Of a stretch of DNA of 64,000 nt, positions 5,516 through 8,500 are shown one piece after another. The translations under genes and the position numbers were made by a program. The DNA is taken from contig NW_003314267.1 in the NCBI RefSeq assembly GCF_000143415.4, positions 1,562,100-1,626,099 of the forward strand, in the 5' to 3' direction. Under the pieces are notes generated by a model. That model saw only the letters and a list, made by a program, of their open reading frames with translations, had not been told where the DNA came from and did no database searches. Positions within the stretch are counted from its first letter, which is position 1; every line of letters begins with the position of its first letter. The DNA is from Selaginella moellendorffii (Eukaryota > Plantae > Lycopodiophyta).

Positions 5516-8500
5516 ATGGAAATGGCGCAGGAACTGCTGGACGGACCGCTGCACGAAATCAACAAAACCAGTAAGTATAATTTCCACTTCAACAGCCATC
5601 AGTGCAAGTACCTGCAAAGCCAATGCTCGGTAGTCGAAGAATACGTGCGGCTTTGGCAGAGCTGCTCCGAACTTAAGCCACTTCCCCTGGCCATACAGGA
5701 GCTCGGTTGTATGCTGAACAGAGCCTTGCAGCTTCTCAAGCAGTGCCAAGACGAGACATGGCTATACCATGCTGCAGTCCGGCTCACTGATTCCAGAGCC
5801 TTTGCGGAGATCTGCTTGTGTCTGGGTAGATTGACGGCCTTGGTCAATGCTCACATGATTCATTGTGCCACGGATATTAGGAGCCCGGGTGTGCAGTACC
5901 TCATGGCCATGCCTTCCAAGCGCAAGCACATAGAGAACCTGCGTTCAGCGATGGAGGACCTGAGTCCCTGCACATCAAGAGATAGAAAGGAGCTCTTCAT
6001 GAGAGCAAATTCCATCACAGAAACTGACAACAGGTATGTTCTGGCACAGTACCTTGTTAACAAGCTGATGTCAAGCAGAGGAGGAGCCGTTGCCACCATT
6101 CAGGCCCTCGAACTGAAAACTTTGATAGGTTCGGGTGCATTTGGTTCTGTGTACAAGGCTGAATGGCTGGGGGCACCAGTTGCTGTGAAAGAGTTTAGAA
6201 GCGGTGATGCTTCATTCGACAAGGAGGTGAACATCCTGAAAGAACTTATTTTAGAACCGCACCCGAGCGTGCTCCAGATGATAGGATACTATCAGAAGGA
6301 TGAGAAGGCTTACCTTGTCATGGAGCTGATGGAAAGGGACCTGACCAGTGTTATAAGGAAGGCTGAAGGCTCGCTGCAACTTTTAACTTCTGTAGACATT
6401 ATGCTCCAGATCGCAAGCGGCATGAGCTACCTCCATCAAAGGAATGTGGTTCACCGAGACCTCAAGCCTTCGAATGTCCTCGTTAAGACATTAAAGAACC
6501 ATGCCTGCAACACTTGTTTCGACGCGAGGTTAACAGACTTCGGAGTCTCAAAGTCGAACTTTATAAGCTTTGCACCGGACTTGTCTTACCAAAGGGGGAC
6601 GATCCAATACATGGCTCCAGAGATGCTGAGGGGCCAGAAGTACTCCAGAGAAGTCGACGTATACAGCTTCGGAATTACTTGCTTCCAGATCCTGACTGGA
6701 ACGCTGCCATTTCAGGACGATGGCAAGCAGCTGGTGGCAGATAAACTGGTCGAGGCGATCGAAGATGGAAATAGGCCTGACCTTCCAACAGGCTGTCCAC
6801 TGGAGCTGGTTGTTCTCCTCAACAGGTGCTGGAACAGGAATCCGAAAGATAGACCAACCTTCGAACAGATATCCAGGATGCTGTGGTCGCTAAAGGAAAG
6901 GTTGCTTGGTGGGTACAACCTCCAATCCAGCTTCACAGGCAGTGATATGTCCAGTTGCAAAGCTGCCGAAGAGCTGACACTCGCTGCAGGAGATATGATC
7001 TGCCAGATTTCTGTTGCTGCTCCGTTCAGAAATTTTCACCAGTGCCACTTCTTGCAGTCGAGGTGCAAGCAGATTTTCAGCTACCGGGAATTTCCAACTA
7101 AGCTGGGACTTCGCACATGGTTTGCCGTTCAGATAAAACTGGTGACTACCTTGAGAACTGCGTTGTCGCTGATAGAGTCTTACAGTGAAGATAGGTGGTT
7201 GCATATGGCAGTGCTGAACGAGCATAACCCGTGGGCATTCAGAAAAGCTCTTGACGATATCAACAGATGTGAAACCACACTGAGAGCCATAAACCCTGGT
7301 AACCACAGCGATAACATAATGACGTTCCCTGCTGTTCCTGAGCAATATGTGGAAGATGATAAAAAGAGACTGGCAGAAAGCATTAAAGGCTTACTTGATG
7401 CATCGGACGAGGCGACAGTTAAGTTGGCAAAATATTTAGTTCAAAAGTCAGCTGCTGATTCAGTTTTTCCGTGCATCAGTCCAGAGGAAATCGTACTGCT
7501 CGATTTTGTAGGAATGTCAAACCATGGGACGATGTTTAGAGGAAGATGGCTAGACGTACCTGTGATGGTAAAAGCCCTTGGAACAGGAAATGAAGCTGAA
7601 AAGCTCCTGAAGGAGCTTGACAAAGGGCACGCAGAACTTAGAAACAGGCCCCATCCAAATGTAACGCAAGTTTTCGGCTACACAAGGCACGGGGAAAACC
7701 TGTTCGTGGTGACCGAGCGGGTCTCTGGAGGCCACTTCCGAGTGACAAAGTTCCCTCTTGTATTGACCATCGAGATCCTGCTTCAAGTTGCTCAAGGCGT
7801 GGCCTACTTGCATGAACATAACTGCGAGCTCTCGGACTTGAATACGCTGCTGGTGGAATTTGAGAAAGGCCACTTCGACGAATTCACCGGTGGCATCACT
7901 GTCAAAGTTTCAGCTCGGTCCAACTTCAGAAAACGAGATGGACAAAATAGCTTGAGTACTCTGGCTGGAAGGTTGAAGTATCCGTTTCACTTCCCCCATG
8001 CACCAGCGGCGGACTTCAGGAAGACCGATGCGTACAACTTTGGTATAGCCTGCGTAGGAATGATCACCGGGCAAACCATCGGGGAAGAAATACTGCTCTC
8101 TGGAAAACTACCGCAACTCTCTCACGATTGCACGGGAATCAAGGCTGTAATAGAGAAATGCCTGAGTTCGCAGCCTCCTGCCTTCCATCAAATCGTGGAA
8201 CTCCTGCAATCAGCTCAACTTAGAATGGAGTTTCCACCTACAAGCGACATAGACTACCGACGGATGCTTCTGAACTCCAGGGCTCAAATTGGACTCAAGC
8301 TCGACATAACGGGAGACGCAGTAATTGGTGGCAAGCTTATTGCTGTTGGAAACGTAGACAATGTGGGTAACAGGCTCTACCAGTGGATCCGTCAGCACAA
8401 AGATGGAACTATAGAGCGGTTGCGGCCATTTCTTGTGACGGAGTTGAACTCTGGGACACTGGAGTATGATCTAACAGCCGACGACTTCAACAAGGCAATC

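Follow-up and report, generated by a model that had tools for sequence, protein, structure and literature searches.

A tandemly duplicated MLKL-like bundle-brace-kinase unit in a protein of the lycophyte Selaginella moellendorffii

In the lycophyte Selaginella moellendorffii, an intronless gene encodes what is very probably a member of the plant MLKL-like superfamily, in which the whole unit of helical bundle, brace and kinase has been tandemly duplicated within the gene. The gene lies in a stretch of 64,000 nucleotides (nt) of contig NW_003314267.1 (assembly GCF_000143415.4, positions 1,562,100 to 1,626,099 of the forward strand), which is referred to here as the window and to which all positions refer; the features of the gene are all on the forward (+) strand. 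Its open reading frame (ORF) extends over 5489..8947, is free of internal stops and, from the first ATG at 5516, encodes 1143 amino acids (aa). From the amino terminus, the coding sequence with its stop codon (5516..8947) specifies a four-helix bundle (4HB), a brace and a kinase, then a second 4HB, a second brace and a pseudokinase, and finally an immunoglobulin (Ig)-like tail; two kinase or pseudokinase domains are carried in one chain, which has no transmembrane or extracellular part. The explanation that we favour as a whole, with moderate confidence, is that the protein is a covalent MLKL pseudo-dimer with a competent-looking first kinase, a degenerate second kinase and an Ig-like tail, and that it forms a self-contained switch. 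That such a switch would operate in cell death or immunity is a more tentative proposal, made by analogy with related proteins.

Architecture of the doubled protein

The two halves of the protein (aa 1-485 and aa 486-1143) are homologous over 456 aa (BLASTP, E 9e-28, 25% identity), and their alignment is collinear, passing in each half from a helical domain through a linker (LAQYLVNK in the first and LAKYLVQK in the second) to a kinase. An initial annotation, made from the sequence alone, had already recognised an internal tandem duplication, and the coordinates that it gave for all four pieces were right to within about 20 nt; it had also described a single intronless ORF at 5516-8230, of which the single intronless chain stands and the end does not, the frame running 239 aa further to 8947. 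Neither a pair of neighbouring genes nor an error of assembly can account for the doubled frame, as the junction is in frame and conserved in three paralogs; the inter-module linker itself (6911..6970, aa 466-485) connects the kinase 1 envelope to the second helical domain. A Pfam search with the ORF returned two kinase stretches and a weak match to IG_AIR9, and otherwise no domain above threshold.

The two kinase domains differ in their state of preservation. Kinase 1 (6101..6910, aa 196-465; Pfam PK_Tyr_Ser-Thr, E 6e-64) has intact motifs (GSGAFGS at 205, VAVK at 222, HRDLKPSN at 313, DFG at 341 and APE at 367), and it therefore retains, as had been claimed for it, the Gly loop, the VAIK Lys, HRD, the catalytic Asn, DFG and APE. 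Its best single-domain relative of solved structure is the kinase-like domain of Arabidopsis MLKL (6ka4_A, E 3.4e-37; 6lba_A, E 8.6e-34), to which it is closer in a PDB sequence search than to MLK/MAP3K9, TAK1, Raf and RIPK1; judged from these nearest solved relatives (AtMLKL, MLK/MAP3K, TAK1 and Raf), kinase 1 appears to be of the TKL type. Pseudokinase 2 (7484..8227, aa 657-904; Pfam kinase, E 2.8e-10) keeps the VAIK lysine (VMVK at 683) and is otherwise as degenerate as had been supposed: the Gly loop is degraded (GMSNHGT at 666), HRD has changed to LSD with loss of the catalytic Asn (ELSDLN at 771), DFG is missing through a deletion and FPH stands in place of APE. The remnant of its activation segment is rich in Ser and Thr. 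A further database entry, SELMODRAFT_422394 (P0003), is 98% identical to the protein and is an older JGI gene model without aa 293-405; it cuts out 6392-6730, an in-frame stretch of 339 nt that starts with GT and ends with AG, and without which kinase 1 would lack its catalytic loop, DFG and APE. This stretch may be a mis-predicted intron or, possibly, the mark of a kinase-dead splice form.

Each kinase is preceded by a helical bundle similar to the MLKL executioner 4HB and by a brace. Bundle 1 (5516..5875, aa 1-120) and bundle 2 (6971..7300, aa 486-595) are both supported by AlphaFold2 models and a fold search of the PDB, and the first also by hhalign. Brace 1 (5876..6100, aa 121-195) is a series of helices closed by the conserved LAxYLVxK motif, and brace 2 (7301..7483, aa 596-656) is shorter and ends in LAKYLVQK. 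The AlphaFold2 models, for which the input was a 25-sequence alignment of relatives without seed-plant MLKLs, are all-helical for bundle 1 with its brace (aa 1-195; pLDDT 81.5, pTM 0.79) and for bundle 2 with its brace (aa 486-660; pLDDT 76.7, pTM 0.71). Brace helices follow the bundle in both modules, those of brace 1 at 124-131, 135-147, 154-165 and 174-189, and the D...L and LAxYLL(xK) columns are conserved in the family alignment (A3).

Both models, when aligned exhaustively to 48,161 representative PDB chains (VIA-align Z-scores), ranked the N-terminal domain of human MLKL (6ux8_A) first among all chains, with Z 14.1 and a root-mean-square deviation of 2.8 Å over 145/152 residues for bundle 1, and with Z 13.1 and 2.9 Å over 134 aa for bundle 2. 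The second and third ranks were taken by AtMLKL3 (Z 11.3, 189 residues) and mouse MLKL (Z 11.2) for bundle 1 and by 4btf (Z 11.1) and 6ka4 (Z 9.8) for bundle 2, so that the same three MLKL families head both searches. Bundle 1 also matched 6zvo_A (Z 13.8), AtMLKL structures matched the bundles with brace at Z 9.8-12.9 over 172-189 residues, and the CC-R domain of NRG1.1 was among the matches (Z 7.2-7.9). A check by AlphaFold and Foldseek, which the initial annotation had proposed, was borne out in part: the top matches were indeed Arabidopsis MLKLs, two cryo-EM structures being the sole matches with a probability above 0.8, but their E-values were not significant and no match to the bundle model was found at E<=0.001.

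Profile comparisons lead to the same family. By hhalign, the family profile A3 was matched to the DUF1221 N-termini of two seed-plant MLKLs (92.5%, E 4.8e-7, 103 columns), and the hidden Markov model of A3 scored 31.3 and 27.6 bits on the seed-plant DUF1221 MLKLs P0233 and P0197. With the two Selaginella helical domains as a profile, three matches were obtained among 1.84 billion representatives, including P0122, a metagenomic protein of 1129 aa that is collinear with the Selaginella protein over 1061 aa (E 3e-54) and that passes the Pfam gathering score of MLKL_N (30.9 vs 27 bits, in two stretches). Taken together, the fold search, the DUF1221 profile and transitivity through P0122 indicate that both helical domains, as modelled, are four-helix bundles of the MLKL/HeLo type, each with a brace, which is the likeness first proposed for them; the first three PDB ranks, the DUF1221 alignment and the MLKL_N match in the homolog P0122 all uphold it.

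The C-terminal tail (8228..8944, aa 905-1143) comprises 239 aa, is basic (net +11) and contains an A9/Ig-like part at about aa 928-1004. The Pfam match to IG_AIR9 (E 5e-4) is below threshold, the atlas leads (IG_AIR9 and SCAB-Ig/PH) have scores below 0.85, and a sequence search of the PDB with the tail gave no match. The tail is shared with P0146, a single-module Selaginella paralog of 685 aa whose C-terminal region aligns to aa ~905-1127; since a single-module protein carries it, the tail predates the doubling and appears to have been inherited from a single-module ancestor. It might act as a targeting or sensing add-on.

Paralogs, relatives and history of the doubling

Besides P0003, the closest database proteins are S. 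moellendorffii LOC112344816 (P0001, 93% aa identity) and LOC112344817 (P0002, 90%), which RefSeq labels 'uncharacterized protein' and whose genes are intronless and lie ~52 kb apart on scaffold GL377571.1. A full-length word search recovered the whole architecture in Selaginella paralogs only, all other matches being made through the kinase domain alone. The three paralogs are intact, with 1141-1143 stop-free codons, and their ratio of nonsynonymous to synonymous divergence (dN/dS, Nei-Gojobori) amounts to 0.34-0.38 over the whole coding sequence and stays below 1 in each domain for which it could be estimated, although the counts per domain are small: about 0.45 for bundle and brace of module 1, about 0.2 for bundle 2 and 0.32-0.53 for the pseudokinase. 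To judge from the last of these values and its small counts, pseudokinase 2 is under purifying selection, and three stop-free ORFs with a dN/dS of ~0.35 across domains argue against the status of pseudogenes. Of the words sampled from the locus, 23-72% were present in twenty sequencing runs from 9 studies; the type of these runs as RNA is guessed, so that they give a weak hint of expression only.

At the DNA level, the similarity between paralogs (95.25%, blastn) is limited to 5397-8947 in the window and 9879-13432 in the paralog locus L002, that is, to the ORF and 119 nt upstream of it; it ends at the stop codon, and the flanks are unrelated. The conserved upstream stretch (5397..5515) is a probable 5' untranslated region or promoter-proximal segment. 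Synonymous divergence (dS) is mosaic among the three paralogs (5516-8944, L002 and a third locus, L003): in brace 1 it is 0 against P0001 and 0.17-0.20 against P0002, and bundle 1 displays the opposite pattern, which suggests gene conversion or recombination between copies.

Relatives with the same unit were found in Selaginella, in mosses and in metagenomes, and in most of those aligned from mosses and Selaginella the canonical kinase motifs are present; the seed-plant DUF1221 proteins P0233 and P0197 are pseudokinases (Lys changed to Arg, HRD to HGE and DFG to GFG). The single-module P0146 has an active-looking kinase with 43% identity to kinase 1. Proteins of the moss Ceratodon purpureus (P0131, P0136, P0139, P0121 and P0138) join the bundle-brace-kinase unit either to a response-regulator receiver domain or to repeats of the DC1 (C1_2) type. 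P0131 and the metagenomic P0122 and P0130 are doubled, with both kinases intact, and the bundles and kinases of the two metagenomic proteins nest within the moss clade. Other arrangements were also observed: P0133 and P0135 are long proteins that have the unit at their C-terminal end, the metagenomic P0143 has a bundle, a pseudokinase (HGE, no DFG) and then an active kinase, and P0144 from Sphagnum troendelagicum has a single bundle followed by a kinase and then by another, MAP3K-like kinase.

In the bundle tree, both Selaginella bundles and that of P0146 form one clade (85/91) and the moss sequences another (91/91), with both modules of P0131 and of P0122 inside the latter. The kinase tree groups kinase 1 with P0146 (95/91), nests the moss modules as the bundle tree does and leaves kinase 2 unplaced on a very long branch. 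A single ancient doubling common to mosses and Selaginella was rejected on both trees, in which the branches of kinase 2 and P0146 are long. The unit therefore appears, from these trees, to have been doubled at least three times independently, with exact placements that the long branches make uncertain, and among the doubled lineages compared it is apparently in that of Selaginella only that the second kinase has decayed. As the doubled moss proteins keep both kinases intact, the split into kinase and pseudokinase is better seen as a later decay in Selaginella than as the reason for the fusion.

Proposed function and alternative explanations

The bundle of MLKLs from animals and Arabidopsis is restrained by the brace and the (pseudo)kinase, and upon activation the freed bundle oligomerises and either permeabilises membranes or forms a Ca2+ channel (10.1101/681015; 10.64898/2026.08.07.743466); MLKL 4HB domains are thus executioners of cell death in animals and plants alike (10.1101/681015; PMC10951266; PMC11297308; 10.64898/2026.08.07.743466). 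In wheat, the kinase-bearing MLKLs Pm13 and R3AK act as executors of immunity, and how active they are is governed by the state of their kinase (PMC11297308; 10.64898/2026.08.07.743466). Cereal tandem kinases keep a kinase and a pseudokinase in mutual inhibition within a single chain, and this inhibition lasts until effector binding (PMC8761531; 10.64898/2026.08.07.743466). By analogy, the Selaginella protein could act inside the cell as a switch of the MLKL type that is complete in itself. At rest, kinase 1 would be packed against pseudokinase 2 as an intramolecular lock and the braces would restrain the two bundles, as in MLKL and in the cereal kinase-pseudokinase proteins. The trigger might be a ligand or effector that binds the pseudokinase or the tail, or else phosphorylation by kinase 1 of the Ser/Thr-rich remnant in the activation segment of kinase 2; the released bundles would then oligomerise and act on membranes.

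Several observations weigh against this reading. The Z-scores of 13-14 are near the ceiling for unrelated helical bundles, which in this aligner can reach ~13 by arrangement alone (a designed nanocage scored 11.1), so that the fold by itself is not conclusive for likeness to MLKL. The Selaginella protein stays below the Pfam thresholds of MLKL_N (PF22215 / cd21037) and DUF1221; neither helical domain matches DUF1221 (PF06760) in Pfam even at E<=10, and the best Pfam hint for them is DUF7792 (E 0.04). On its sequence, the protein accordingly belongs to the superfamily as a divergent member and is typical of neither Pfam family. Bundle 1, with a net charge of -3, is mildly acidic. The 4HB of Pm13 does not kill alone, the brace-kinase does (PMC11297308), and a bundle fold is for this reason no proof of an executioner role. 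Finally, no NLR was seen among the ORFs of at least 180 aa in the 64-kb window.

The order of an active-looking kinase followed by a pseudokinase also invites an explanation in which the logic of RIPK3 and MLKL is fused in cis, kinase 1 being the dedicated activator of pseudokinase 2 and the second module alone the executioner. It would accord with the switching of animal MLKL by phosphorylation of its pseudokinase (10.1101/2021.05.03.442385), with the Ser/Thr-rich remnant in kinase 2 and with the charge of the bundles, the second being basic (net +3, isoelectric point 8.9) and the first acidic. Kinase 1, however, has a complete bundle and brace of its own under purifying selection (dN/dS about 0.45), which argues that module 1 is more than an activator alone; it is paralogous to kinase 2 and to the single-module MLKL-like kinases and is not RIPK-like, and the moss proteins with two intact kinases indicate that doubling needs no division into activator and executioner. 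With the bundle of module 1 conserved and active kinases the norm of the family, a RIPK3-like role of kinase 1 towards module 2 is possible, although unlikely and not favoured. The initial annotation had envisaged just such a fusion of activating kinase and executioner: the kinase-pseudokinase tandem with MLKL-type bundles stands, but kinase 1 belongs to the first complete MLKL-like unit.

Equally, the protein could be a sensor of the tandem-kinase type, in which the pseudokinase and/or the Ig-like tail would serve as effector decoys, the signal would pass through kinase 1 or a partner, and the bundles would be regulatory or oligomerising. The kinase-pseudokinase order and the origin by duplication match the cereal tandem kinase model (PMC8761531), the variable C-terminal add-ons of relatives (DC1 and response regulator in Ceratodon) resemble integrated decoys, the gene belongs to a paralog cluster with signs of gene conversion, and the lethal part of Pm13 is, as said above, the brace-kinase and not the bundle (PMC11297308). 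This explanation is rendered improbable by the lack of a linked NLR among the ORFs surveyed in the window, by dN/dS values below 1 everywhere, which at this coarse level give no sign of diversifying selection, and by the kinases themselves, which appear to be of TKL/MLKL type and not of the RLK-Pelle type of the known cereal tandem kinases (PMC10951266).

The favoured pseudo-dimer could be extended into a self-contained necroptosis-like device, with an activating kinase and the pseudokinase that is its substrate in a single polypeptide and a bundle of the pore-forming type attached to each. Kinase 1 would act on module 2 in the same chain (in cis) or in another (in trans), and the phosphorylation would unleash two executioner domains at once. 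We consider this bolder version quite unlikely; if true, the repeated doubling in mosses and lycophytes would point to a covalent MLKL dimer as a favoured ancestral form of cell-death control, older than the pseudokinase MLKLs of seed plants. Least probable by far is that the gene is an ordinary signalling kinase without an immune or death role, whose bundle would serve structure or dimerisation only, or that it is a duplicate in decay or one that was never expressed: the RefSeq label of the paralogs, runs guessed to be RNA and paralog homology that stops at the ORF ends would suit it, yet the three ORFs are stop-free over 1141-1143 codons with a dN/dS of ~0.35 in all domains, and the same architecture arose repeatedly.

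Neighbouring genes in the window

Beyond the gene, the window holds a large ORF with a condensin Cnd1-like fragment (10131-12218), an ORF for a CCCH zinc finger plus RING protein (31959-33098, + strand), one for a GH17 (beta-1,3-glucanase-like) protein (47842-48867, - strand) and an intronless ORF for an L-type (legume) lectin receptor kinase of 638 aa (54067-55983, - strand). The G+C content is low at 1-4000 (0.33-0.38) and at 44001-46000 (0.26), compared with about 0.48-0.55 elsewhere, and these stretches are probably repeats or transposon remains.

Comparison with known systems

Plant MLKLs have been described as a seed-plant family (10.1101/681015), fusions of MLKL_NTD with kinases and tandem MLKL_NTD domains as restricted to Poaceae (PMC11297308), the kinase-bearing MLKLs being regarded as recent fusions of the grasses, and tandem kinase proteins as the product of duplication or fusion of kinases without further domains (PMC8761531); one survey reports NLRtracker "MLKL" matches in non-seed plants, the architecture of which is not described (PMC11218826). 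No description of a repeated bundle-brace-kinase unit was found in the searchable literature, and within that scope the initial view of the architecture as not previously described holds. The locus and its relatives reveal a bundle-brace-kinase family with intact catalytic motifs in lycophytes and mosses, and because these relatives retain the motifs, the pseudokinase state of seed-plant MLKLs may be derived. With its repeated doublings of the whole unit and its varied C-terminal additions, the family merges two currently active themes of plant immunity, the tandem kinase-pseudokinase receptor and the MLKL executioner, and since it ties a live and a dead MLKL unit together in one natural construct, the Selaginella protein would make the intramolecular control of 4HB release directly testable.

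Among known proteins, the plant MLKLs (AtMLKL1-3; DUF1221; 6ka4 and 6lba; 10.1101/681015) share with the Selaginella protein the HeLo/4HB, the brace and a TKL-type kinase fold. They consist of one module instead of two, and in seed plants they are pseudokinases, whereas in Selaginella kinase 1 is intact and kinase 2 is without catalytic residues; in place of their Ser-rich C-terminus, the Selaginella protein has the Ig(A9)-like basic tail. Animal MLKL (6ux8, 6zvo and 4btf) has the same order of bundle, brace and (pseudo)kinase and is the protein that both bundles resemble most in structure, at a sequence identity of 12-15%. It is activated by RIPK3, while the Selaginella system has no separate activating kinase and has instead a doubled module of which the first kinase looks active. 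Pm13 (MLKL-K) and R3AK likewise combine a 4HB, a brace and an active kinase in one chain, and for them an immune role with cell death as output has been demonstrated (PMC10951266, PMC11297308, 10.64898/2026.08.07.743466). These are single-module, Poaceae-specific fusions of a cd21037 MLKL_NTD bundle with an RLK-Pelle (LRR_8B) kinase, and the Selaginella protein is closer than they are to the DUF1221/TKL lineage.

The tandem kinase proteins (RPG1, WTK1/Yr15, WTK3, Sr62 and RWT4) resemble the Selaginella protein in having, in one cytosolic chain, two kinase domains that arose by duplication and of which one has decayed (PMC8761531). They serve in disease resistance, often with a linked NLR. What is repeated or fused in them is the bare kinase of RLK-Pelle families (LRR_8B, WAK and RLCK in the cloned cereal genes), whereas the Selaginella unit includes a bundle of the cell-death type and a brace before each kinase. 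The nearest counterparts are the moss relatives, which have the same bundle-brace-kinase unit and, in P0122 and P0131, the same doubled state. In the moss doubled proteins, both kinases are intact and the C-terminal add-ons differ (DC1 repeats or a response regulator), and their doublings appear to be independent of the one in Selaginella.

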